The position numbers were made by a program, and so were the translations under genes. Positions 675 through 31,590 of a stretch of 32,546 bases of DNA are shown here, in pieces. The notes below the pieces were generated by a model, which ran no database searches, was not told where the DNA came from, and was given only the letters and a program-made list of their open reading frames with translations. The stretch comes from Klebsormidium nitens (Eukaryota > Plantae > Klebsormidiophyceae): positions 1 to 32,546 of the forward strand of contig DF237770.1 of NCBI GenBank assembly GCA_000708835.1, read 5' to 3'. Positions within the stretch are counted from its first letter, which is position 1. Each line of letters begins with the position of its first letter.

Positions 675-770
675 CACTAATCTGCAGCTAGAAAATATTT
701 TCAGACATCGCCCGCGCCGCGTTTTTTCCTCGTGAAAATTTCCTTCCTCCATTGGAGAGAGAACCTCAGC

Positions 771-3496
771 ATGCAAGCCGCCAACACCCCTTGCTCTCTC
801 GAGCACACCATCGACGTGACTGCAATCGAGGCCCCAGAGGCTCTGCCCCCGGGGGAGGAGGATGCTGCGACCCACGGCGCCCGCGATATCAGGACGGCGC
901 CGTCCAACGTTTTGAGCATCAGAGATGAGATTCTGCGCCTTGCCGACCACGGACTGTATGGAATCCCTGTGCACATCAAGATCGATTCTCGTGGCAAGAA
1001 GCGGAGCCGATTCCCTCCCACCTACGCGCACATCGTCACCGTGGGCGATTGGGAGAAGTATATCGGCGCAGTGCTCGATGCATTTGAAAACCCCAACGGA
1101 GTGGCCATACTGACCGGTACAAGCGGTCTGTTTGTCATAGATATCGACGTGGGAGAGAGCGGCGATAAGAAGTCGGGGATGGAATTCTGGCACGGGCAAG
1201 TGGAGGAGCATGGGGAGCCTGAGAGTCTCTCCGTTCGCACGGGGTCTGGAGGGCTTCACTACTACTTTCGGCTCGATGAAACGACCGGCTTACATGACAC
1301 TGCCAACTTTGCTGGACTCACATTCGATATGCAAAAGTTTGGTGTCAATGCCCGCGGCACCGGAGGGGTGATTTTTGCACCCCCGAGCAGGTACGGGGAA
1401 GGCACGGATACATGTCGCGAGTACACGTGGGTGACCGGAGGCGATGGTAAGATCAACAGTATGCCCCCGTGGCTTGTGAGCTTGATCAACCGAGGGCGCG
1501 CCTCGGAAGGGGTCTCGAGGCATGCAAAAGGCCGAGTGTCTCATGATAAGGAAGTCGATCCTGAACAAATCACGCCAGAGGCCGTCGACGACGCAGAGGC
1601 TGGCGGGCCTGCAGCCAAGGCAGCTCCGGGCTCGGCACACGAGGAAGTGAAGCAATTGGTGAGGGAGAGAGGCAAGGATTGCCATTCATATTATACTGGC
1701 TTAACAGTCCTACCGGACGGCAACAGATCCTTTCAGTTCAGGGTCAAGGGGTCGCGCCAATGCTACCTGGGAAAAACGCACAGAGGGTCCAATAATTTCA
1801 CGGTGATTCAAGGGTGCACCGGTGATTTCCAGGAGTTGTATTACAATTGCTTCGGGTCCGGTTGCTATGGGAGCAAGCCGAAGCTGCTGGGACGTCTCAC
1901 GATAGCCGGTGCTCTTGAGCAAGCTGGGGGTGGTGCTTTTGGACCCAAGGACCATCAGCCGTCGAGCCTCACTAAGCTGGCCGCTAGGTTCTCCGACCCG
2001 TTCATGCTGTCAAACGTGAGTAAGAGCGATTTTGGTAGTGCTTTGATATTCAGCAAACTTTTCGAGCATGACAGGCGGGTGGTGTACGACTCAGGGAGAT
2101 TCTGGACGTGGGATGCGACGAGTTGGGTGCCGTCCGATACGGAAGCAGCTCTGCTGAAGACCTCGTTTATGTACCACATGGGACGAGTCAAATCGTTTTG
2201 GTGCGATCGGCTGGAATGCGCTGTTGCCGAAAAGGTTCAGCCGTTGACGACTCGCAGAGACAATGCTCTGAACGAACTGCAGTCCCGGGCCTCGGAGAGT
2301 GCGGACGAAGAGCGAGAAGGGCGTCTTGAAGGGCATTCAAAAGGCGGAGAAGGCTATCATGGCAGACTTCGACATGGAGATGAAGAAGATACCCGAACCG
2401 GTGTGGCGTGGGGCAGCGGTCGAGTCTGTTCCCATCGCTCAAAGGTGTCTCATTCCTTTGAAAGTGAATCTACGAGTGCGGGATTTTGCAAGCTCGCTGA
2501 ATGCTAATCCGCGACTATCTGAACACCACATGCGGCTCGATCGACCTCCGAACGGGGGAGCTGTATGCTCACCATCCGAGCAACATGCTCTCGAAGGAGA
2601 TTTGTACCCTTTATGAGGGTGCAAGTTATCCATCACCGCTCATCGACCAATTCATGGCTGAGGTGCTGTCCGAGGACATAGTCCCCGTTATGCAAATGAC
2701 GCTTGGGTATGGCATCACAGGCCACAGCAAGGAAAAGCAATTCATCGTCATGCATGGCCCAACGAACAGCGCAAAGACAAAACTCGTCACCATGGTCCGA
2801 GAGTGTACCGGACCGTACTGCGTTTCGATGGCCCGCGACTGCGTCATTGGCGCAGGTCAGCACTCAGAAGGGGCCGCCACGCCGCACCTTCTTATGCTCG
2901 ATGGAGCGCATATTGCAGTCCTCGAAGAGACTGAGGACTCGGATATTTACAATGGAGCATCGGTGAAGGCGATCGCGTCCGGCGATGGGAGCATGACGGT
3001 AAGGGGGTTGCACAAGGACCCCGTCGAGGTCACCATGAGGTGTTTGCCGATCATATGCACCAACTCATCGCCAAAGTTCAACGCAGGAGATACGGGCACC
3101 CTCAATAAGCTGAGGATTTTCCCGTTTGAGCACGAATTCGTTGAGAATCCGAGGCCTGGAACCAACCAGAGATTACGAGACACCGATCTCATGGATAAGA
3201 TCAAAAGCCCCGAATGGAGGAAGCAGATGCTGGCTTGGTTGGTGCGTGGCAGCATGATGTGGTACGAGCGGGGCACTCTACCGACGGTCGAAGAGTTGCC
3301 TGCGGCCATGGGCAAGGCGCTCGAGAGCTATTCGAATGACAACGACCACTTTGGGAACTTCATCCAGGACAGGTGCATCGTACAATGGCAAGCTGTTTAC
3401 TGGAGTTCGTGTCAGCACGTTGGGCCGGGTGGAATCAGATGTGTCGAGGCGAAGTGCAGGGGCGATTGTACACAAGAGGTGCTATTTTCATGGTAG
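771..3496 (+). pseudogene. Bifunctional Prim-Pol / Zn-finger / D5-like SF3 primase-helicase with at least 2 frameshifts and a lost C-terminus
   Basis: Prim-Pol motifs NGVAILTG, FVIDIDV, RTGSGGLHYYF and RGTGGVIFAPPS. Candidate Zn ligands C..H..CxxxxC. D5_N-like SDFGSALIF..FWTWD. Frameshift near 2310 into KGVLKGIQKAEK..., then near 2510 where LNANP|DYLNTTCGSIDLRTGEL restores the D5 motif. Walker A is GPTNSAKT (G replaced by A), Walker B is VLEE, motif C is ICTN. Confidence 0.88.
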
Positions 3497-3850: not shown

Positions 3851-5185
3851 ACAACATCGTTGCTCTACGTGAAACTTGCAAGGCTTTTGGACTCCGATAA
3901 TAAGCTCACATCTCTCGGACCTTCAAGTAGCCCACTGTTCATGTCCATAAGCGGTCATTCATCACTTGCTGCTCCATGGTGCGAGCGGAAGCATACTTCA
4001 TCTATGTTATTCATACAAACCCATGCTACACAAAATTTAGTGTGATGGCCACAAAGATGGCAACACATACTTTTTAGATTGTCTCTCATCAGCCCGAACA
4101 GCCAACGCAGACCTCGTCGTTGCAAATCACTGCCATCTCGTCTTTGTCCTGCCCGTCATCCTCGCCTTTCTCCTTCTGCTTATCCTTCTTTCCCTTCTTC
4201 AGAGGCGCCGTCACCGCAGTCGGGACCGTCGAAGGATTTGTACGAAGATAGTACAAACTGGTCTTTAGTCCCTTCTTGTGCCCGTAGACGAGCGCAGAGG
4301 ACAAGGCCCCAGGGGTGGGTTTCGGCCAAAAGAGGTTCATGGACTGGGACTGATCGATGAAGATTCCGCGGTCTGCCGCGAGGTCAATTACGACCCGCTG
4401 CTTTATCTGCCATACCGTCTTATACAGCTCCTTCAGATCGTCCGGGATCTCGGGGATGGCCTGAATGGAGCCCCGATTCGCCATGATCTGGTCCTTCATA
4501 TGATCATTCCACAGGCCCAGCCTGACGAGGTCCGCCATGAGGTGGTTGTTTGCCACCACAAACTCCCCTGCGAGAGTACGTCGCACGTACAGGTTGCTGC
4601 TCAACGCCTCTGCCGCCTCGACGTTCCCAAGGAGGTGACCGGTAGACGCGGTGGGCATCACACACGTAAGCAAACTATTGCGCATGCCCGACTTCTTCAC
4701 GCGCTCCTTAAGGCCGGCCCAATCGTAGCCCATCTCGGCTGGCTTCTTCTCCCACAGGTCAAACTGCAGCAGCCCCTTGGACGAGGGAGATCCCTGGAAG
4801 GTCTCATACGCGCCCTTCTCCTCAGCGAGCTCGACGGACGCCTCGACCGCCGCGTAGTAGATGCTCTGGAAGATGGCGCTGTTGAGCGCCCTGGCCCCCG
4901 GGCTGCTGAAGGGCAGCCGGAGCATCATGAAGACGTCCGCCAGCCCCTGCACGCCGAGGCCCAGGGGACGGTGGCGCATATTCGAGCGCTTGGCCTCGGG
5001 AGTCGGGTAGAAGCTCCGGTCGATGCTCAGGTCCAAGTTCCTGATTACCACCTTTGTCACCTCCCGAAGTTTGCGCATGTCAAAGGTCGGCTTGTTCTCA
5101 TCGTCGAGAGCGACAAACTGGGGAAGCGACAGGGACGCCAGGGTGCAGACCGCCGTCTCGTCCTTGGAGGTAAACTCCGTGATCT

Positions 5186-5448
5186 CTGTAAGCAGAGGAG
5201 ACAGAGATGGAAGTGGAACTCGAACTGGCTCTGGCCACGAGCCTCTTGTTGCTGACCCTCATAATAGGAACATGCTGCTGCTATGCCACAAAGATGAAAC
5301 AGGAACGACTCCTTCGGACGCCCGACCAACAATCTGCAAAGCTGACTTGCATGGCAGACACACTGAATCGTCACTCATCACATATCAGTAGCTTACGTAG
5401 TCCGAGCACATATCATGACGCGTCTTCCGATTTCCCCACGCCCCTCAC
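5186..5448 (-). other. Spliceosomal intron 2 of RNR (263 bp, phase 1, inside the catalytic Glu codon)
   Basis: Donor GCAG|GTGAGG at 5448, polypyrimidine tract CATCTCTGTCTCCTCTGCTTACAG| ending at 5186. Removal gives NLCAEI (G|AG = Glu). Confidence 0.92.
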
Positions 5449-5464
5449 CTGCGCAGAGGTTTGA
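5207..5464 (+). CDS. Intron-nested antisense 85-aa ORF with one transmembrane-like helix and a Cys cluster
   Basis: ATG lies ~20 nt inside intron 2. [21 protein letters not shown] is followed by basic [10 protein letters not shown]. The ORF ends 16 nt into the upstream exon. Confidence 0.35.
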
Positions 5465-5875
5465 GCTCTTTATGGTACCAAGATGCTTTTGGTTGCTCTT
5501 GCGGTTGACGGCGTCCTTGTACAGCACGTAAGGCGTCCCTCCCTCCACTTGCGCGGTGAGCATGGCGCTCCAGAGCGCTTTCGCCCGAACCACCTTGCTC
5601 GCGAGTCCGGGTGTCGCCTCGTACCTCTCGTACAGCTCCTCAAACTCCTCCCCGTAGCAGTCCGGGAGACCCCTCGCCTTGTCCGGGTCAAAGAGAGACC
5701 ACGTGCCGTCAGACTCGACGCGCTTGATGAACAGGTCCGGGACCCAGAGAGCCGTGAACAGGTCCCTGCACCTCACCTCCTCGTTGCCAGAGTTCTTGCG
5801 TAGCTCCAGGAACTCGAAGACGTCGGCGTGCCAGGGCTCGAGGTAGATCGCGATCGAACCCTTCCTCTTCCCTCC

Positions 5876-6365
5876 CTGCATTATAAATCACGAAGTCTTA
5901 TCAAACCGCCAGAAATCAAAGCAATGGGACCGCTGCATTCCAGGGGGCTTGATGACCTCTCGTGACACCTCCGGCGGAGGTCTGAGGGCGTGTTTGATGA
6001 CCGCGAAGCTGTGTGTCCTGCAGTCATTGAAGAGGAACCAGTACCTCCGAGGCCTGCTCCTGGAATAGCGGGCCAGACTCTCTACGGTGTGATCGAGATG
6101 CGCCTTGAAGCTGACTTCAAAGGAGGGATTCGGGTCGCTCAGCGACTTCAGCCCGATCAAAGAAACGATGTGTGGGTCCGTATTGGTGGGGTCCATCTCA
6201 GGAAAGTGCTCCATCACCATGGTTTCGCGCCCGTCCTTGCTCTTTGCTTGCAGCGACAGGTGATACAGGATCGGTATCAGCTTGAAACGGTGCAGCCGGA
6301 GCGTCAGATCGACAGTCATCGTTTGCAGATATGGGAACAAATAATGATGGACCAAAAATACTTAC
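5876..6365 (-). other. Spliceosomal intron 1 of RNR (490 bp, phase 0)
   Basis: Donor CAG|GTAAGT at 6365 and acceptor TTTATAATGCAG| at 5876. Removal joins YVNQ to GGKRKG in frame, matching the conserved RNR loop-2 motif. Confidence 0.92.
5888..6319 (-). CDS. Intron-nested 143-aa protein; candidate permuted papain-like (PPPDE/LRAT-type) thiol peptidase
   Basis: ATG lies 46 nt after the donor and the TGA ends 11 nt before the intron end. N-terminal LYHLSL (His) and C-terminal YWFLFNDCRTHS resemble the H...Y-x3-N-C arrangement of permuted NlpC/P60 enzymes. The family call is from motif recognition only. Confidence 0.5.
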   Translation of the reverse strand: MTVDLTLRLHRFKLIPILYHLSLQAKSKDGRETMVMEHFPEMDPTNTDPHIVSLIGLKSLSDPNPSFEVSFKAHLDHTVESLARYSRSRPRRYWFLFNDCRTHSFAVIKHALRPPPEVSREVIKPPGMQRSHCFDFWRFDKTS

Positions 6366-7382
6366 CTGATTGACGTAGCGAGCCAACGCATCAAAGTTCC
6401 TCAGCATCGGCACGAGCCCTGTTGCCTTCCCGTTGGTCCCCCTGATGGTTGCACCGTCTGAACGGATGGAATGCACGTGGACGCCCAGGCCTCCACCCCA
6501 CTTGCTGATGAGTGCGCAGTTCTTGAGCGTGTCGAAAATCCCCTCGATCGAGTCCCCATGCCCAGCAAGAAGCAGGAGTTGTTCTGCTGGTGGTTCGTGC
6601 CCGCGTTGAAGAGCGTCGGCGAAGCGTGCGTGAAGTAGCCGCAGGACAGGAGGTTGTAGGACTCCAGGGTGCGAGCAATTGAATTCGGCGACGAGCCGTC
6701 GGCATCAGGGCCGTGCAGAGACAGGGCGACCCTCATCCACATGTGCTGCGGCCTTTCTGCCGGCTCCCCGTCCTTGGTGAGGAGATACCCCCTGATCAGG
6801 GTCTTGGCCGCAAAGTAGTCGAAGGAGTAGCTTCTGGCGTGGTCCGTGGCGTTTTCCAGCACCTCGCAGAGGCCGTCGTCGCTCATGATGCGCTCGTAGA
6901 GCACTTTGTCCCACCTCTCGGGGCCGAGGAGCCTGACGGACTCTCGCAGGGTGGCGGGGGTCGACTTGTGCAGGTTCGAGATCACGATGCGCGCAGCCAG
7001 GATGCCGTACTCAGGGTGAAGCGTTTTGAGGCTTTCCGAAACTTCTGACGTCAGGACGTCGATCTCCTCTGTCGTGACCCCTTCGTAGAGGGAGACGCTG
7101 ACCCTCTGCACGATCTTCACGGGGTCAGCGTTGAGCAGCGGGGCCCCAGTGACCTGAGCGCTCCGATCCCTGAGCATTTTGGACTGCTTGAAGTGGCCAT
7201 AGGCGGGGCGCTTGGAGTAAGGCTCGTGCACTTTCTTGCAGAGGGCCTCAAGGCGCTGCGTGATCTTGTCGAACCGGACCTTCTCCCGACTTCCGTTGCG
7301 CTTGGTGACCTCCATTGTCACTTTTTCTGATGCAATCTCTCCATTTCTGAGGCTTTATACACCCTGCCACGTCAGCACCGTC

Positions 7383-7720
7383 GGCACTTCTGGCACTGCT
7401 GGCACTGTTGGCGCACTGCTGGCACTGTCGGCACTTCTGGCACTGCTGGCACTGTTGGCGCACTGCTGGCACTGTTGGCACTGCTGGCACTGCTGGCACT
7501 GTACACGCAACGTGGCACCCTGTTACTCACGGCACCACCTGTAACCTGCGGCACCAGATATGGCACCACTTGCCCTGTGGCACCACTTGACCGGTGGCAC
7601 TACTTGACTCTTGACCAGCAGCACACCTGTGGCACCACTTGACATGTGGCACTCAGTAGAGGCACTGGTTGCACCAATTGCCATCGTTATGGCACCAATC
7701 GTTATGGCACCAATTGCCAA
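7383..7720 (+). repeat. Degenerate GGCAC-core repeat field between divergent RNR and F-box/XPA-like genes
   Basis: 22 same-strand GGCAC copies by manual count. 9-mer tandem units (GGCACTGCT/GGCACTGTT/GGCACTTCT) grade into GTGGCACCACTTG and ATCGTTATGGCACCA units. Confidence 0.9.
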
Positions 7721-9145: not shown

Positions 9146-9163
9146 AGTTCGTGTGAAATATTT

Positions 9164-9464
9164 ATAACAGTAGACCTAGTAGAAATCCTTTTCCTCCAAA
9201 GAAAGTAGCGAATATGTATATAGCCTTCTTTAGTGTGAGGAAATTATAACAGTAGACCCAATAGATATCTTTCTTCTCCAAAAAAAGTAGCGAATATGTA
9301 TATAGCCTACTTTTGTGTAAAACAATTATAACAGTAGACCCAGTAGAAATCTTTCTTCTCCAAAGAGAGTGGCGAATATGTATATAGCCTACTTTTGTGT
9401 AAGGAAATGATAACAGTAGACCCAGTAGAAATCTTTCTTCTTCAAAGAGAGTGGCGAATATGTA
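9164..9464. repeat. AT-rich 82-bp tandem array, ~3.7 copies
   Basis: ATAACAGTAGACC starts at 9164, 9246, 9328 and 9410 (exact 82-bp period). Each unit contains GCGAATATGTA. Confidence 0.95.
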
Positions 9465-9871: not shown

Positions 9872-11224
9872 TTAAGGCCGGACCCACGAAGTTACGAAAC
9901 CTGAGGACCTATAGAAGGCGTCTCGCTTTCTGGACTGGGCGATCAACGGTCCCCACTTGTCTACTATGTCGACGATCAGAGGGGAGTGGCAACCTTTACT
10001 GCCTCTGGTGATCCTTCCTACGGTCTGCCGGATGTCGCTCTTGGGGGTCGCCATCACGAGCGAGTTCAGGCGGGGTATGTCCAGGCCCTCTGAAGCGATC
10101 GCGTACGTCCCTACGATGACCTGGCAGCCTTCTGCAACACCGTTGAAGGTCTCCCTATTCGTCCCGCCCAGGAAGAGGCCGGCCTCGAGCCCCCCTTCTT
10201 TGAGAGCCCCCTGCAAGGAGATGCAGTGGCTCCTTCGGTCGGATAGCACCAGGATGCAGCGCCCCTGTGCTGCCAGCTTCCGCACCTTGCCTAATATGAG
10301 GCTGTTCCTCGGGGGATCGTTGCAGAGAATGTCGATCATCTTGCAGATTGCCAGCTGCCCGTTTTTGAAGAGGGGGGGCTTTTCCTTGTAGACAACTTGG
10401 TCGTAACGAACCGCCTCCACGGAGACGCCACTCTCTTCCTTTCTCTCGACCAAGAAGCAGACCTCTCCGAGGTACCAGTTGATGACGTCCGTCAGCCCGT
10501 CCCGTCTGGCGACAAAGGCGCTGAGCCCCAGAGAGTAGGGCGTGCAGAGGTAGCTGAGGGCTCTCGAGAACACCTTTGCGGCCACGTGGTGGCATTCGTC
10601 AAAGATCACGAGGTCAAAGTCGTCAAAAATGGCCCGGTCGTAGCTCCTCATGCTCAGCAACTGCAGCATTCCTATCACAAAGTGGCAGCCCTCCGTGACA
10701 ATGTTTGCCCCCTGTATCCGGCCGACGCGCGCTCCGGGGGCGAAGGTCCCAATGCGCTCCTCCCACTGGGTCAGGAGCACCTCTTTGTGCACGACAATCA
10801 GGGTCTTGACCCGGAGGGTGCACGCGACGCTTATAGCACATAGCGTCTTACCCCAGCCAGTACACAGAGAAAGTATCCCGGCCCCGCGCTCCCGCAAGGC
10901 ATTAAGGGTGGTATTACAGGCACTGATCTGCTTGCGAGACTCGTCCAGTTCGCCCTTAAAAGCTGGGAAATCGTCCAGGACACGGGGTGCACTCCGGTTG
11001 TCAAAGGGCGCGGGCAAGTTGAGCCCCTCTAAGGGGACATGTGGTGGGAACGTGACGCTGCCATCATTGTGTTCTTCGAGGCAGCAGACGGACACCGGGA
11101 CCTTGGTGAAGCCGTCCTCGATTGCGGTCGCCGTGCAGCGAGCTCGGAGATCCGCAAGCGTGGAAGTGCTGAGGGCAGCAACCTGCTCGCTTGACAGCCG
11201 GTAGCCGCATCTGCCTAGTTCCAT
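9872..11224 (-). CDS. Superfamily 2 helicase, A18/XPB-like (nucleocytovirus type), apparently intact
   Basis: Motif I LSLCTGWGKT, Ia LIVVHKEVLLTQW, II IFDECHH, III GLSAF (SAT-like), V IASEGLDIPRL and VI QTVGRITR. ATG at 11224. Confidence 0.9.
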   Translation of the reverse strand: MELGRCGYRLSSEQVAALSTSTLADLRARCTATAIEDGFTKVPVSVCCLEEHNDGSVTFPPHVPLEGLNLPAPFDNRSAPRVLDDFPAFKGELDESRKQISACNTTLNALRERGAGILSLCTGWGKTLCAISVACTLRVKTLIVVHKEVLLTQWEERIGTFAPGARVGRIQGANIVTEGCHFVIGMLQLLSMRSYDRAIFDDFDLVIFDECHHVAAKVFSRALSYLCTPYSLGLSAFVARRDGLTDVINWYLGEVCFLVERKEESGVSVEAVRYDQVVYKEKPPLFKNGQLAICKMIDILCNDPPRNSLILGKVRKLAAQGRCILVLSDRRSHCISLQGALKEGGLEAGLFLGGTNRETFNGVAEGCQVIVGTYAIASEGLDIPRLNSLVMATPKSDIRQTVGRITRGSKGCHSPLIVDIVDKWGPLIAQSRKRDAFYRSSGFVTSWVRP

Positions 11225-11324
11225 GCTTGGCAAACTTTGCAAAAGGCTTTCTTCCTAAGTCATGCCTATTGACACTGGTGCGTTTAGATTGCACGATTTA
11301 TAATGGGCACCTCTTTCAAAAGGC

Positions 11325-14245: not shown

Positions 14246-14703
14246 CCAGGAGCGAGAACGCGAGCTTCTGAGATGCGCTCGCCAGCGGGAGGGCCGCCGA
14301 GATGGACGCCAGATGGATGAACGGAAGTGCCGAGGTTGTAGGGACGCCGTTCGCCAGCAGAGCGACCATCGTAGGGCTCTCCGGGAGCGAGAACGCGAGC
14401 TCCCGACATGCGCTCGCCAGCAGGAGGGCCGCCGAGATGAGCGCCAGATGGGTGAACGGAAGTCACGAGGTAGTCGGGACGCCGTTCGCCAGCAGAGCGA
14501 CCATCGTAGGGCTCTCCAGGAGCGAGAACGCGAGCTCCTGAGATGCGCTCGCCAGCAGGAGGGCCGCCGAGATGGACGCCAGATGGATGAACGGAAGTGC
14601 TGAGGTTGTCAAGACGCCGTTCGCCAGCAGAGCGACCATCGTAGGGCTCTCCAGGTGCGAGAACGCGAGCTCCTGAGATGCGCTCGCCAGCAGGAGGGCC
14701 GCC
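14246..14703. repeat. 135-bp tandem array, ~3.4 copies
   Basis: Units CC(A/G)GG(A/T)GCGAGAACGCGAGCT... start at 14246, 14381, 14516 and 14651. They read as 45-aa repeats (GGPPAGERISGARVLAPGEPYDGRSAGERR...) on the minus strand. Confidence 0.95.
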
Positions 14704-16874: not shown

Positions 16875-17930
16875 TTGTCAAGTGTCTGGAATGCTGCTTC
16901 AGCAAGAGATGCTTTAGCACAGCAAATGGAGCATCAACAGAATAGAAAGTGGATGTTGCGCGCACTGGTGCCTCTATGCAATCAATTTGATATTCTTTTC
17001 ATGTTCATGCAGTTGCGTGTGCTGTCTGCCGAGGAGCGCGCAAGTTTGCTGCTATCGACTGGCTCAGGCTGCGACGTTGTGTGGAAGGGATCCTGGGCGG
17101 TTGTTTGCCGCGTGCGCGTCTCCGCAGGGACGTCATGGGCTCGTATTTTCCCAGAATGGCTGGGGGCTGATGTTGCCGTCAAAGAGAATGACGATCAGGT
17201 GTCTAAGCTAGAGATCTCTGCCGCTGAGGTCCTTGTTGCGTCGACTTTCCAACACGAGAACATCGTCCGGCCATTCGCGGTCTCTCTAAGTGGTCCTCGG
17301 TCTCTTCTAGCCTTCTTTCATTACTACAACCAGGGCTCGCTGGAGTGAGTGCTGCAAAACCGGCAGTTGAAAGTATTGTCAGGGGCTTTGTATGAACCTC
17401 TTAGTAGGTATTGGTTGTTGGTGAGGGCTTGTTTGGGCCTTCTGAAGGGGATCGAGCACATCCACACACTAGGCTTTGTGCACAACGCTTTGAATCCTAA
17501 GAATCTCCTCGTCAACTTCGATGAGTCGAGTCAGGTGGTAACCATAGCGGTGAACGACTTTCGAAAGGCCACTCGACTTGTCGATAAAAGACGCCACCTG
17601 TGTTTTAGGATGATGAAATATCGGAACGAGTTTCTCCGGTCCAACCCGTTCGCTCCGGTAGAGTTTGGCGATGGGTCCACATTTTCAATAGCGACTGACA
17701 TGTTCTCAGTAGGTTGTCTGCTCGAGGAGATTCTTGGGCTGCAATTATACGTCAACAAGAAGGATCACTGTACATTCGGGGACAGGTTGTCAGAGAGTGA
17801 TGACTGGGAAGCAGTCATAGACCTTATAAAGAGGGCACAAAAAAGAGATCAGAGGTTGAGGCCCCACAGCGCTCAGATTATTGAACAATTCGAAAGACTA
17901 CAGACTTTCTTAGAAAACGACCTTGCATAA
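16875..17930 (+). pseudogene. Protein kinase-like pseudogene (degenerate Ser/Thr kinase fold)
   Basis: WKGSWAVV (Gly loop), DVAVKE, EVLVASTFQHENIVR, in-frame TGA at 17346-17348, GIEHIHTLGFVHNALNPKNLLV (catalytic Asp lost), NDFRKA (DFG altered), APVE and DMFSVGCLL. A Ser/Gly-rich segment at ~16570-16750 may be its N-terminus. Confidence 0.8.
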
Positions 17931-24009: not shown

Positions 24010-24385
24010 TTGTGGAAAGTTTGACTGGCAAGACGTTTTCTGCCGGAGTCGCCGTTGCGGGCGGATCTCATGCTGCTGGAGCTCACATGATTCTTTTCTC
24101 AAGCGCGATGTTTCGGGTAAACATTGTTGGATCAATGGTCGTGAAGATCGCTTGAGAATGTATCTCGAACACTTCATGGAGTGTCGAAGGAATGCACCGA
24201 CCGAGACTTCAGCGTGTGTGCTGTTGCCTCACTTACATGCGGTCGATCGTCGTCTTCTCAAAGGCTGGAAAGTGGTTCTTAATTTGCCTAAGGGAGCGTG
24301 ATTCGTGTTGGAAACGGCTCCGGAGACGGGTTCTCTGAACAACGGTCTGTTCGCATGATGCAAGTGTTGTATTATGCCCCTTCTC
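24010..24385 (+). pseudogene. Degenerate Dam-like N6-adenine methyltransferase-like domain at the start of pol
   Basis: Manual reconstruction across two 1-nt shifts: ELVESLTGKTFSAGVAVAGG / WSSHDSFLKRDVSGKHCWINGREDRLRMYLEHFMECRRNAPTETSACVLLP...LLKGWKVVLNLPKG / ...MQVLYYAP. WIN sits where the WxNPP motif IV is expected. Confidence 0.5.
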
Positions 24386-27300
24386 CTAGCTCGCGCACGG
24401 TTTCAAATATTGGCCAAGTCGAGGCTGATGTTGGAATCTATGCGCCGGGCGTCCTCGACGGGCCTGAGTCGAGCGAGCGCGGCGCGCGTGCGGCTCAGCG
24501 CGAGCAGTCAAATATTGACCCAAAACGGGCCAGATTTGAATTGATGCGCCCGGACGATTCCGAGGCCGTAGCGTTACCAGAAGCTGTAGCTGGGGTGTTG
24601 CAAGCTTCTAAGAGTCGAGGAACCTCGAAAAGGCTGACGATGTTGTTTGGAGCAAAGGCGGGTGGTGCCGATGCAAACGTGTTGTTTGATTCAGGGGCGA
24701 GTCACAACTACCTATCCAAATCGTTTGTTGCTTTACAGAGGATCTCTGTTGATGACTCTTTGCGCGGTGATGTAGTCTTAAGAGACAATCATCCTGCTGG
24801 TATGGCTGGGACTGCGAGAGTGTTTGTCAAGCTTGGAGCTTTCCAAAAACCTGTCGAGTGCCACTGTCTTGTGATGAACGAGCTCTTGGCTGATGTGGAT
24901 GTGACGAGGCTTTTATGACGTCTCATAAGGTTGTCCTTGATTACCACAAACAAGTGTGCCGTATGAGAAAGGGGAATCGGAGGATCACCGTTTCTCAGAA
25001 GCCTCTTGCAAGAGATATGCCAAATGTGGCACCGTCTGAGAAGTTACTCGGTGCAATGCAGGTTAAAAAGCTAATCAAGAGAGGGAATAAAGCTTTTCTT
25101 GCTGTGGTTCAGCAAGTGAAGCCCGACATTGTCCCCTCGGATTCTGATGACGACCCTTGTCACGTGAAAAGCATTCTAACTGAGTACGTTGATGTTTTCA
25201 GTGACGAGTTACCTGCAGAGCTCCCTCCGAGACAGAATGTGGGTCCATCCCTACTGAGCCTGGACACGTGCCTCCATTTAGACCGATGTATCGGCTAAGC
25301 CCAATGGAAACACGTGGCGAAGGAACAAATCACAAAGCTCCTTGAGAAGGGTCTCATAGAGCCGAGTACAAGTCCGTACGGGGCACCTATCTTGATTGTA
25401 CCAAAGCCTAACGGCAGAGGACTTCGGATGTGCCTAGACTTGCGTGCTCTTAACTCGGTAACGATAAAGAATCGTTATCCGTTGCCAAGGATCGATGACT
25501 TGTTGGACAAGATCACCGGTGCTTCTTACTTTACCAGTCTGGAATTGACTGCAGGGTATCACCAAATCAGGATAACGGATGAGGATATTCCGAAGACTGC
25601 TTTTCGAACGCCGTTCGGACATTTTCAGTTTAAGGTATTGACCTTTGGCTTGACAAACGCGCCGGCAACGTTTCAAGCAGTAATGAACGATATATTCCGT
25701 CCGTACCTTGATGACTTCGTGGTTGTGTACCTCAATGATATCATGATATATAGTAAGTCGGCAGAAGAGCATGAGCGTCATCTTCGATTGTTCTGGATAT
25801 TTTGCGAAGGGAGAAGTTCTTTGTTGCCTTACCAAAATGTGATTTCGCTAAGCAGGAGATCAAGTTCCTTGGACATATCGTTGGAGCCGGCGGTATCAAG
25901 GTGAACCCTGAGAAGGTCGCAGCCGTGGAGCGTTGGGAACCTTCTAAGGATGTACATCAGGTGCGATCTTTCCTTGGTCTCGCAAACTTCTTCCGGCGTT
26001 TCATTCAAGGGTATTCTACACGTGTTGCTCCGTTGACGGATCTAACTAAGTCGGGAAGACCCTGGAGTTGGACTAAAGAGTGTGGGGATGCATTTGAGGG
26101 TGTCAAGTGGGCTTTGACACATACCCCGGTGCTACGCTCTCCGGTTGAGTCAAAGAGATATGAGGTTGTGTCGGACGCCTCAACCCTCGGGATTGGAGCG
26201 GTATTGCTTCAGGAGGGCCAGCCGGTCGCTATCCATTCCAGAAAGCTGAGCGCTGCGGAAGTTAACTATACTACTACGCAGCAAGAACTACTGGGTGTAG
26301 TTGATGCTCTTAGGGTTTGGCGCTGTTACCTTGAGGGGGATGAATTCGATGTAGTGACGGACTACTGCCCGAATACCTTCTTTCAAACACAGCCAAATTT
26401 ATCGAGGCGGCAAGCCCGATTGTCAGAGTTCCTGCAGAGATTCAATTTTAAGTGGCGTTACCGGCCTGGCCGTACTAACGTCGCCGATCATTGAGTCGCA
26501 ATCCTATCGGCGTTGCCTCGGCCGTACTCTTCGAAAGGGAGCTCCGGAATAAGGAGTCGCCTAGGGAGGGCCCGCCCGAAAGCGATGGTACTTCCACTGT
26601 GTTTGCCGGAAGTCGTGGCCCGTCTGATTTGCCTGTCTTGCTTCAAAATCTGATTCGACGTGGTTACGCAGGGGATGCTTGGTTGCGAGATGCAAACAAT
26701 CAAGCTTCCGCTCGACTGGGTGTCAACTCTACCGGTTTGTTCTTGCGTGACGACAAAGTGTACGTGCCTAACGATGTGATCGTTAAACGCCTTATTTGGC
26801 AGGAGGCGCACGACGCTAAGTACAGCGGTCACTTTGGCGTGAGCAAAACGCGGAGAACAGTTGAGCAACTCTTCTGGTGGCCAAAGCTACGGGAGGAGAC
26901 AAAAGACTATGTGCGGAATTGTTTCGTGTGTCAGTACGACAAGGCGCAACAGTTGAGGCCTGCGGGGCTGCTTCAACCGCTACGGATACCTGAGAGGCCT
27001 TGGGATTCGGTGAGTTTCGGCTTTATCGTCGAACTTCCTTTGACCAAGCGAGGGGATGATGCAATCGTGGTTTTTGTTGATCGGCTTACGAAGATGGTTC
27101 ACTTCGCGGCCACAACAACCACTTGCAAAGCTAAGGGCTTTGCGCAGTTGTATTATGACAATGTGTACCGGTTACACGGGCTGCAGCGAGAATTTGTCTC
27201 GGACAGGGATTCGAGATTCACGGGCAAATTTTGGGCTGAGGTGTGCAATCTAATTGGCACTAGATTGGCTACATCAACGGCATTTCATCCTCAGACTGAT

Positions 27301-28461
27301 GGTCAGACTGATCCGAGTAATCGGACTCTTGAGGATTACTTGCGGCACTATGTTGGGNNNNNNNNNNNNNNNNNNNNNNNNNNNNNNNNNNNNNNNNNNN
27401 NNNNNNNNNNNNNNNNNNNNNNNNNNNNNNNNNNNNNNNNNNNNNNNNNNNNNNNNNNNNNNNNNNNNNNNNNNNNNNNNNNNNNNNNNNNNNNNNNNNN
27501 NNNNNNNNNNNNNNNNNNNNNNNNNNNNNNNNNNNNNNNNNNNNNNNNNNNNNNNNNNNNNNNNNNNNNNNNNNNNNNNNNNNNNNNNNNNNNNNNNNNN
27601 NNNNNNNNNNNNNNNNNNNNNNNNNNNNNNNNNNNNNNNNNNNNNNNNNNNNNNNNNNNNNNNNNNNNNNNNNNNNNNNNNNNNNNNNNNNNNNNNNNNN
27701 NNNNNNNNNNNNNNNNNNNNNNNNNNNNNNNNNNNNNNNNNNNNNNNNNNNNNNNNNNNNNNNNNNNNNNNNNNNNNNNNNNNNNNNNNNNNNNNNNNNN
27801 NNNNNNNNNNNNNNNNNNNNATGATGATTGGGATGAACTACTTAGCGGGGCTGAGTTTGCTTACAATGATTCATGGCAAGAATCTATCAAGTGTTCACCA
27901 TTTGAGATGAATTTTGGTCAGCAAGCTCGAACACCCTTGGGGCTTGGCAATGCTCAGATACCTGCTGCTGGGAACTTCCTTCAGCAAATCCAAGAGGTGC
28001 AATCCAGAGCACGGGAACTCTTGCTGCCCGCTCAACAACGTATGAAGTCCTTTGCTGATCAAAGGAGACGCGACGTTGAGTATAACGTTGGCGATCAGTT
28101 GCTTTTGAGTACGAAGCATCTGAAGTTGCAAAATCCTGGGTCGCGCAAGTTGCTTCCCAGATGGATTGGGCCTTTTGAGGTCTTGCAACGGGTAGGCGCG
28201 GTCGCTTACAAGGTGAAGTTGCCAAAGAAAATGAAGATCCATCCGGTCTTTCATGTCTCACTGCTAAAACCTTATTGCAGTGACGGTCGTGTGCAACCTC
28301 CACCACCTCCAGTGGATTTGGATGGGGATCTGGAGTATGAAGTGGAAAGGATCCTTTCTCATAGAGACCGTAAATACGGTAAGCGGTTTAAGAAGGAGTT
28401 CTTAATCCGGTGGCTCGGTTATGGTCCTGAGCATTACTCTTGATAGCCCGAAAAGAACCTC
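24298..28461 (+). pseudogene. pol: Pol: aspartic protease, RT, RNase H, integrase, chromodomain (multiple frameshifts and stops)
   Basis: [39 protein letters not shown] and YLNDIMIYS (YLDD changed to YLND). RH VSDASTLGIGAVL. INT HDAKYSGH...CFVC, IVVFVDRLTK and STAFHPQTDGQ. GPF module, then chromodomain YEVERIL...EFLIRWLGYGPEHYS**PEKNL. Confidence 0.95.
27358..27820. other. Assembly gap (N run) inside integrase
   Basis: Run of N bases. Confidence 1.
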
Positions 28462-29288
28462 NNNNNNNNNNNNNNNNNNNNNNNNNNNNNNNNNNNNNNN
28501 NNNNNNNNNNNNNNNNNNNNNNNNNNNNNNNNNNNNNNNNNNNNNNNNNNNNNNNNNNNNNNNNNNNNNNNNNNNNNNNNNNNNNNNNNNNNNNNNNNNN
28601 NNNNNNNNNNNNNNNNNNNNNNNNNNNNNNNNNNNNNNNNNNNNNNNNNNNNNNNNNNNNNNNNNNNNNNNNNNNNNNNNNNNNNNNNNNNNNNNNNNNN
28701 NNNNNNNNNNNNNNNNNNNNNNNNNNNNNNNNNNNNNNNNNNNNNNNNNNNNNNNNNNNNNNNNNNNNNNNNNNNNNNNNNNNNNNNNNNNNNNNNNNNN
28801 NNNNNNNNNNNNNNNNNNNNNNNNNNNNNNNNNNNNNNNNNNNNNNNNNNNNNNNNNNNNNNNNNNNNNNNNNNNNNNNNNNNNNNNNNNNNNNNNNNNN
28901 NNNNNNNNNNNNNNNNNNNNNNNNNNNNNNNNNNNNNNNNNNNNNNNNNNNNNNNNNNNNNNNNNNNNNNNNNNNNNNNNNNNNNNNNNNNNNNNNNNNN
29001 NNNNNNNNNNNNNNNNNNNNNNNNNNNNNNNNNNNNNNNNNNNNNNNNNNNNNNNNNNNNNNNNNNNNNNNNNNNNNNNNNNNNNNNNNNNNNNNNNNNN
29101 NNNNNNNNNNNNNNNNNNNNNNNNNNNNNNNNNNNNNNNNNNNNNNNNNNNNNNNNNNNNNNNNNNNNNNNNNNNNNNNNNNNNNNNNNNNNNNNNNNNN
29201 NNNNNNNNNNNNNNNNNNNNNNNNNNNNNNNNNNNNNNNNNNNNNNNNNNNNNNNNNNNNNNNNNNNNNNNNNNNNNNNNNNNNNNNN
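28462..29288. other. Assembly gap (N run) in the retrotransposon 3' region
   Basis: Run of N bases. Confidence 1.
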
Positions 29289-30752: not shown

Positions 30753-31590
30753 NNNNNNNNNNNNNNNNNNNNNNNNNNNNNNNNNNNNNNNNNNNNNNNN
30801 NNNNNNNNNNNNNNNNNNNNNNNNNNNNNNNNNNNNNNNNNNNNNNNNNNNNNNNNNNNNNNNNNNNNNNNNNNNNNNNNNNNNNNNNNNNNNNNNNNNN
30901 NNNNNNNNNNNNNNNNNNNNNNNNNNNNNNNNNNNNNNNNNNNNNNNNNNNNNNNNNNNNNNNNNNNNNNNNNNNNNNNNNNNNNNNNNNNNNNNNNNNN
31001 NNNNNNNNNNNNNNNNNNNNNNNNNNNNNNNNNNNNNNNNNNNNNNNNNNNNNNNNNNNNNNNNNNNNNNNNNNNNNNNNNNNNNNNNNNNNNNNNNNNN
31101 NNNNNNNNNNNNNNNNNNNNNNNNNNNNNNNNNNNNNNNNNNNNNNNNNNNNNNNNNNNNNNNNNNNNNNNNNNNNNNNNNNNNNNNNNNNNNNNNNNNN
31201 NNNNNNNNNNNNNNNNNNNNNNNNNNNNNNNNNNNNNNNNNNNNNNNNNNNNNNNNNNNNNNNNNNNNNNNNNNNNNNNNNNNNNNNNNNNNNNNNNNNN
31301 NNNNNNNNNNNNNNNNNNNNNNNNNNNNNNNNNNNNNNNNNNNNNNNNNNNNNNNNNNNNNNNNNNNNNNNNNNNNNNNNNNNNNNNNNNNNNNNNNNNN
31401 NNNNNNNNNNNNNNNNNNNNNNNNNNNNNNNNNNNNNNNNNNNNNNNNNNNNNNNNNNNNNNNNNNNNNNNNNNNNNNNNNNNNNNNNNNNNNNNNNNNN
31501 NNNNNNNNNNNNNNNNNNNNNNNNNNNNNNNNNNNNNNNNNNNNNNNNNNNNNNNNNNNNNNNNNNNNNNNNNNNNNNNNNNNNNNNNNN
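30753..31590. other. Assembly gap (N run)
   Basis: Run of N bases. Confidence 1.

Follow-up and report, generated by a model that had tools for sequence, protein, structure and literature searches.

Introduction

Genes carried inside spliceosomal introns have been reported from mirusviruses, where more than 2,000 such genes were found (PMC12768974, November 2025). They include endonuclease-bearing "shintrons" and MING-1, a family of unknown function that always lies at the same site of the terminase gene; according to that report, other viruses and eukaryotes apparently have nothing of the kind. Here, a comparable arrangement is described in a stretch of 32,546 nucleotides from Klebsormidium nitens (contig DF237770.1), called the window below. 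On its minus strand, the gene for the large subunit of a class I ribonucleotide reductase (RNR) is interrupted by a 490-bp intron with GT and AG ends (intron 1), and an open reading frame (ORF) on the same strand fills nearly all of it. The reading that we consider probable is that of a spliceosomal-type intron in the RNR of a nucleocytoplasmic large DNA virus (NCLDV), nearly filled by an autonomous gene that has been inherited together with the RNR.

The resemblance to MING-1 introns is one of arrangement, compared by description and not by sequence: a conserved gene of unknown function occupies a GT-AG intron at the same site of an essential viral gene across divergent genomes, with long stable inheritance and no homologues outside the virus group. 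Unlike MING-1, the nested gene sits in the RNR large-subunit gene and not in the terminase gene, its virus would be NCLDV-like and not a member of Mirusviricota, and a free-standing copy exists; whereas MING-1 was reported without an obvious active site, the family studied here has conserved His, Cys, Asn and Asp residues. As in the mirusvirus shintrons (PMC12768974), a spliceosomal intron of a conserved viral core gene is nearly filled by a compact ORF, but no HNH, GIY-YIG, VSR-like or PD-(D/E)XK domain was detected, and the pattern is vertical rather than patchy. A preliminary description of this locus had proposed a new class of cargo-bearing intron, which no longer holds since the mirusvirus report precedes it (PMC12768974). 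What is new is another host gene and another cargo family, in addition to the free-standing copy and what would be another virus group, and the arrangement may be the NCLDV-side counterpart of MING-1-type introns. With an NCLDV-like equivalent tied to streptophyte algae, such introns would be known from more than one phylum. Its host gene belongs to nucleotide metabolism and is not a virion gene, and it would offer a second, independent case in which to ask what ties an intron to its cargo and by what route that cargo is expressed.

Phage and viral RNR genes host group I introns with homing endonucleases, inteins, and mobE, which splits nrdA. As in those elements, conserved RNR sites are the landing place for a gene-carrying insertion, and one related gene (L009) also has an intein; unlike them, the present insertion involves neither a ribozyme nor protein splicing, its ends are GT and AG, and its removal would depend on the host spliceosome. 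Nested genes of cellular organisms usually lie in long introns with much spare sequence. The present gene resembles them as an independent gene placed wholly inside the intron of another, but only 27–54 nt before and 12–40 nt after the ORF remain, and the site does not shift by a single base. Spliceosomal introns are also known in a punuivirus (10.64898/2026.10.09.758095) and in the Ectocarpus EVEc (PMC13236599), although the passages searched in these two reports mention no protein gene nested in the introns. As in both of these and in chloroviruses and pandoraviruses, the GT-AG introns lie in a core gene of what would be a nucleus-using giant virus, and the GC content and endogenous setting are comparable to those of nucleus-dependent or endogenous NCLDVs.

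The RNR gene and its introns

The RNR gene occupies positions 4089..7315 of the minus strand in three exons, its first ATG being taken as the start by assumption. The exons and the reading-frame pieces of exon 1 were searched individually. The ATP-cone, the all-alpha domain and the ten-stranded barrel domain were all recognised by Pfam, as is characteristic of a class I large subunit, and a PDB sequence search matched the yeast and human large subunits. Exon 1 (6366..7315) covers the barrel profile up to position 72, exon 2 (5449..5875) covers positions 73–213, and exon 3, which includes the stop codon (4089..5185), covers positions 215–523 between 5185 and 4092. The profile is thus unbroken over both gaps, at 72/73 for intron 1 and at 213/215 for intron 2. 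The copy in the window carries one frameshift, which had escaped the preliminary description, as had the N gaps and the retrotransposon of the scaffold.

Intron 1 (5876..6365, minus strand) has 490 bp, begins with GTAAGT at 6365 and finishes with TGCAG at 5876. It is in phase 0 between a Gln and a Gly codon, and its excision brings the RNR frame back exactly. In the large subunits of yeast (Rnr1) and human, residue 288 is the counterpart of the Gln that ends exon 1, and we take it to lie within loop 2, the specificity cross-talk loop of the enzyme. The preliminary description had placed the intron exactly in this loop, and both this placement and its coordinates, exact to the base, are correct. 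It had also read the CAGG found at both junctions as a duplication made upon insertion. The motif is indeed present, but it is uninformative because a Gln codon followed by GT and an AG followed by a Gly codon produce it; since codons and splice consensus dictate it, and one relative (L006) reads CAAG, a target-site duplication was rejected.

Just 58 nt of intron 1 lie outside the ORF. Before the ORF, a leader of 46 nt (6320..6365, minus strand) follows the 5' splice site, with a GC content of 35%, compared with 53% for the whole intron, which bears out the short AT-rich leader noted previously; it is a candidate position for the promoter or 5' untranslated region of the nested gene. The trailer, which separates the stop of the ORF from the 3' splice site (5876..5887, minus strand), has 12 nt, and therefore the branch point would have to fall within the end of the ORF.

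Other kinds of insertion were also considered. A covariance search with Rfam over positions 4000–7500 (E up to 1) gave zero matches, and hence no group I or group II ribozyme core. Of the marks of an introner or transposon-derived intron, neither terminal inverted repeats of intron 1 nor, within the 32.5-kb window, a second copy of the ORF or of the intron was found. An intein is contradicted by the lack of a Hint domain match, by the separate stop of the ORF and by a reading frame different from that of exon 1.

The 3' splice site reads ATGCAG in the window (5876–5881) and in L002 and L007, placing an in-frame ATG two codons before exon 2 that is absent in other lineages; prokaryote-style gene callers therefore report exon 2 as a separate "gene". 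With such callers, the RNR of each related contig comes out as three or four "genes", and RNR gene models of giant viruses and endogenous viruses need splice-aware calling.

Intron 2 (5186..5448, minus strand; 263 bp, GTGAGG...TTACAG, phase 1) splits the Glu codon of the catalytic N-x-C-x-E motif and contains no ORF. Its position is common to four related lineages, in which it measures 227–254 bp with GT and AG ends, while in a fifth, degenerate copy (L006) the gap at this position is about 700 bp. This gap (L006 1627–2328) holds a 138-aa ORF without a Pfam match. Directly upstream of the RNR start codon, positions 7375–7714 of the window consist of tandem repeats, with periods of 9 and 47 nt followed by units of 17 and 15 nt.

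The nested gene

The nested gene (5888..6319, minus strand) runs from an ATG at 6319 to a TGA at 5890–5888 and comprises 432 bp, that is, 143 codons and the stop, as had been described. It is a protein-coding gene under purifying selection by several measures. A sense ORF of at least 143 codons appeared in only 38 of 20,000 dinucleotide-preserving shuffles of intron 1 (0.2%), although the preliminary description had allowed that ORFs of this length might be common by chance. The GC content at third codon positions (GC3) is 0.73, against 0.80 for RNR exon 3. A protein search returned ten homologues of 100–167 aa with 54–82% identity, and the most distant copy (L009) is about 45% identical, which widens the range to 45–82%. 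Internal stops are lacking in all nine readable DNA copies. The ratio of non-synonymous to synonymous substitution (dN/dS), a comparison that had been proposed earlier, is 0.07–0.15 for pairs with unsaturated synonymous sites. The RNR exons give lower values, and non-synonymous change in the ORF is three to four times faster than in exon 2, yet it is clearly constrained. A chance ORF is ruled out by the shuffles, the GC3 and the dN/dS.

The gene family is small and virus-restricted. An exhaustive profile search of 1.84 billion representatives retrieved only three clusters, all of them from the family itself, and the family profile found no members in IMG/VR or in JGI metagenome contigs. Proteins of between 0.55 and 1.75 query lengths were within reach of the protein search, and neither contig collection contained a close relative.

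Distribution among relatives and descent with the RNR

RNR genes with an insert at the same codon boundary, which the preliminary description had suggested looking for, do exist: a homologue lies between the same two RNR pieces in seven related lineages (L001/L002, L003, L006, L007, L008, L009/L010 and L011). Both junctions are readable in L001/L002, L003, L006, L007 and L009/L010, and the 3' junction alone in L008 and L011. In tblastn, the exon ends of the relatives hit the last and first residues of the window exons exactly (query residues 60 and 1), with the end of exon 1 aligned to its last residue in five lineages (seven loci). The interruption measures 418–510 bp. Its 5' end is GT in the window and all five lineages (GTAAGT, GTGAGT, GTATTT, GTAAAG, GTAAAT, GTGAAC), and its 3' end is CAG in the window and all seven, while the neighbouring bases have diverged beyond alignment, a pattern that fits a U2-type spliceosomal intron. 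An ORF of more than 100 aa therefore lies wholly inside a GT-AG intron at an identical site in divergent genomes.

The leaders of the relatives are 27–54 nt long and cannot be aligned with one another, and the trailers have 12–40 nt. Leader lengths of 46, 54, 38, 27, 28 and 27 nt give all three possible frame relations to exon 1. The nested ORF is therefore a cistron in its own right rather than an alternative exon, which its separate ATG and stop exclude as well. In L009, the ORF shares the frame of exon 1 and was annotated as part of a fusion protein.

The identity of the ORF follows that of RNR exon 2 (Spearman 0.81), and the most divergent RNR (L009, 75% identity in exon 2) bears the most divergent ORF (about 45%). 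For the two pairs that are not saturated, the proportion of synonymous differences (pS) is 0.50 in the ORF against 0.41 and 0.49 in the flanking exons, and 0.40 against 0.42. This matching synonymous divergence of ORF and exons, with congruent identities, indicates long vertical descent. Among 160 RNR loci of 65–72% identity from IMG/VR and metagenome contigs, none is interrupted at the site (0/160) and none has the ORF (0/160). The intron with its nested gene is thus a shared, old feature of one clade. One copy in this clade (L006) is degenerate, with one frame change in the RNR and the loss of the ORF stop.

A single free-standing homologue was found (P0005, in L004/L005; 65% identity), tightly packed between GH17 and RNase H genes on a giant-virus-like contig that also encodes HisRS, TFIIS and a kinesin. 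In a neighbour-joining tree rooted on L009, which has no support values, it nests within the intron-borne copies. The preliminary description of a viral gene inside an essential gene is a fair one, given this homologue in a related virus-like contig.

The loop 2 of the clade reads Q-G-G-K-R (window 5869–5875 and 6366–6368) and is one residue shorter than in 160 of 160 distant RNR loci; the missing residue coincides exactly with the intron site. In L012 (NCBI GCA_040384245.1, GC 36%; 68% identity in RNR exon 2), short GT-AG introns without an ORF (3944–4030 and 4454–4539) lie 1 nt and 2 nt off the two intron sites of the window, L014 has a short ORF-less intron about seven codons downstream of the site, and L013 has none. 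Since these introns are near the site and not identical to it, an ancient intron shared with distant RNR genes was rejected. In L009 (468–5724; L010 is alike), the RNR contains an intein (Hint_2) close to where the barrel begins and at least two more interruptions that are absent from the window gene. About 3 kb downstream of the RNR of L002 (6665–8544), two successive ORFs of 488 and 139 aa occur, the second of which has a Cas12f1-like TNB domain (TnpB/Fanzor-like).

The nested protein

The His and the Asn-Asp-Cys residues pointed out in the preliminary description are conserved: H20 in 11 of 11 sequences, N98 and C100 in 12 of 12, with H38 in 11 of 12. D43, H74, H77, R101, H103 and H110 are also kept in all or nearly all family sequences. 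Two AlphaFold models were built, with mean predicted local distance difference test (pLDDT) scores of 67 and 78.7; the better one comprises residues 1–118. It has four strands, the first three of them N-terminal, and three helices, of which one is short. H20 lies in strand 2 (residues 19–26) and C100 opens the last helix (100–111), so that, as in a permuted thiol hydrolase, a conserved His in an N-terminal strand precedes a Cys at the start of a C-terminal helix. In this model, the order of H20 and C100 would be that expected of permuted papain-like hydrolases of the LRAT/PPPDE type.

The identification as a thiol peptidase or deSUMOylase, in contrast, found no backing in homology. Searches with the single sequence and with every family member returned no relevant match in Pfam (E up to 10), in which no profile of PPPDE/DeSI (Peptidase_C97) or LRAT/NlpC-P60 was hit, and searches of NCBIfam (E up to 10), PHROGs (E up to 1) and, by sequence profile, PDB (E up to 10) gave nothing relevant either. 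Foldseek against PDB yielded nothing significant for either model, with best E values of 0.2 and 0.43. The weaker model matched human PPPDE1 (3ebq) with a template modelling (TM) score of 0.42 and an E value of 0.81, the sole full-length match with TM above 0.4, but the better model did not reproduce it and gave only local matches of 32–33 residues, to a papain-like domain and to Aichivirus 2A. Against BFVD, the best match of the better model was an unnamed 220-aa protein (E 4e-3). The preliminary description was right that endonuclease and reverse transcriptase domains are missing, as no such family was matched: HNH, GIY-YIG, VSR, PD-(D/E)XK and LAGLIDADG gave nothing at E up to 10 in Pfam and NCBIfam and up to 1 in PHROGs, and no nuclease appeared among the Foldseek matches.

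The nested protein is likely to be either an enzyme or a metal binder that relies on its conserved His and Cys residues. Our leading guess is a permuted papain-like Cys-His hydrolase of the LRAT/PPPDE type, a tentative one that we would not expect to hold in most such cases, and a metal site of the form H-x2-H ... C-x2-H is an equally open reading.

Interpretation and alternative explanations

A spliceosomal-type intron in an NCLDV-type RNR, occupied by an autonomous co-inherited gene, accounts for the exact placement, the conserved GT and AG ends, the purifying selection on the ORF, its co-descent with the RNR exons and the one free-standing homologue. According to this reading, intron and gene would already have been present in the common ancestor of the related-virus clade and have since been inherited with the RNR. 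Host splicing would yield the RNR mRNA and remove the nested gene, which would have a separate transcript, driven by a short AT-rich promoter located in the leader or in the last part of exon 1. Intron and gene may thereby be locked together, as loss of the intron would cost a useful gene. Several points weigh against this picture. Splicing at the junctions and the independent ORF transcript are predictions from sequence, and the leaders share no motif that could be a promoter. The frameshift in the RNR means that the arrangement in the window may be a fossil, and the related contigs are metagenomic or Sequence Read Archive (SRA) assemblies of uncertain status, one of them clearly degenerate. 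The survey of RNR loci for uninterrupted genes reached only those outside the clade; the tree that places the free-standing copy has no support values, and the host assignment comes from a single helicase search.

A homing intron of the spliceosomal, shintron-like kind is the likeliest of the alternatives. The nested protein would be, or would have been, a site-specific nuclease or a maturase-like factor of unrecognised fold that copied the cassette into the loop-2 site, and the free-standing copy, which nests inside the intron-borne clade, would be comparable to a free-standing homing-endonuclease gene. Loop 2 is among the most conserved RNR stretches, a type of target known from homing introns and inteins, the RNR of one relative has an intein as well, the ORF fills the intron, the invariant His, Asn, Cys and Asp could bind metal, and mirusviruses do have spliceosomal introns that carry endonucleases (PMC12768974). 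Yet the equal synonymous divergence of ORF and exons and the congruent identities speak for long vertical descent, eight of nine copies are intact, unlike in an invasion-decay cycle, the window has no second copy of ORF or intron, and neither the profiles of the five nuclease families at E up to 10 nor Foldseek point to a nuclease. We hold this explanation to be unlikely. The same holds, with slightly less in its favour, for an intron-gene unit that is, or recently was, a self-propagating giant-virus element whose His/Cys protein is a new nuclease or intron-maintenance factor targeting RNR loop 2; if true, shintrons would extend from Mirusviricota to Nucleocytoviricota, with a new protein fold.

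That the intron was gained only after endogenisation, as in decaying giant endogenous viral elements, with an accidental or decaying frame inside it, is very improbable. The window is an N-gapped scaffold with a degenerate Ty3/gypsy element, the RNR has one frameshift and the D5-type gene one frame change, and introns in endogenous NCLDV genes are read in the literature as a sign of assimilation. The selection data already contradict this view, since the same intron and ORF occur in synonymously saturated lineages with a dN/dS of 0.07–0.15 in the ORF and lower values in the exons; low dN/dS despite saturation means that most divergence arose under selection on both genes, and only 0.2% of shuffles yield such an ORF. 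The mobE-split nrdA of phage Aeh1 reportedly works as an RNR in pieces, and an insert that splits the RNR into separately translated, reassembling polypeptides without any splicing would give a use to the in-frame ATG that three lineages carry two codons before exon 2. The remaining lineages lack this ATG, however, intron 2 splits a codon of the catalytic motif and has no ORF, the invariant GT and AG would be left unexplained, and translation in a eukaryotic setting is monocistronic, which makes this explanation highly implausible. Least credible of all is a degenerate self-splicing element, be it an intein or an ORF-bearing intron of group I or II: RNR genes are its classic hosts and one relative has a Hint domain elsewhere in its RNR, but the Rfam search was empty, 58 nt outside the ORF are all that the intron offers, the 5' exon finishes in G or A and not in U, and the ORF is out of frame with exon 1, with its own stop and no Hint domain.

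Genomic setting

The favoured reading assigns the RNR to an NCLDV. An NCLDV-type primase-helicase with Prim-Pol, D5_N and DUF5906 domains lies at 732–3496 (plus strand) in two adjoining frames, corresponding to one frame change, real or an assembly error, and an intact superfamily 2 helicase (ResIII/DEAD) at 9872–11242 (minus strand) has its best match, 93% identical, in an SRA assembly, while its only named relatives are Klebsormidium nitens proteins (76% and 54% identity). To judge by their sequences, this D5-type primase-helicase and the Klebsormidium-related helicase would point to an NCLDV. No capsid or terminase gene was found in the window or in the related loci. Klebsormidium flaccidum/nitens holds Phycodnaviridae-like NCLDV inserts (PMC5294986), and viral genes in that alga carry spliceosomal introns (PMC10710043).

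A Ty3/gypsy pol of the chromovirus type at 24298–28443 (plus strand), with aspartyl protease, reverse transcriptase, RNase H and an integrase with SH3 and chromodomain, speaks for the window being eukaryotic genomic DNA; this pol is spread over several frames, spans a run of N and is degenerate. The N-gapped scaffold with this retrotransposon suggests that the viral element is an endogenous copy, partly decayed, of a virus in whose relatives the RNR and the nested gene stayed under selection; the scaffold itself would be eukaryotic and is probably that of a streptophyte alga. The GC content of the window without N is 0.527. Runs of N occupy 27358–27820, 28462–29288 and 30753–31590 (463, 827 and 838 bases), and the apparently very low GC at the right end of the window is due to these scaffold gaps and not to AT-rich DNA.

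The closest relative of the helicase lies in different surroundings (L015, 1–7906), with a hybrid histidine kinase, Bro-N, ThyX, an HNH endonuclease and DUF5901; no RNR adjoins it, so the gene order is unlike that of the window. At 16875–17930 (plus strand), only the C-lobe of a protein kinase is recognised, in the second of two ORFs in the same frame, and the gene may be broken. A tandem repeat of 135 nt in 3.4 copies (14246–14703) lies inside overlapping ORFs without a family match. The window also holds an F-box gene, and an 82-nt tandem repeat in 3.7 copies (9162–9464) lies in a low-GC spacer.

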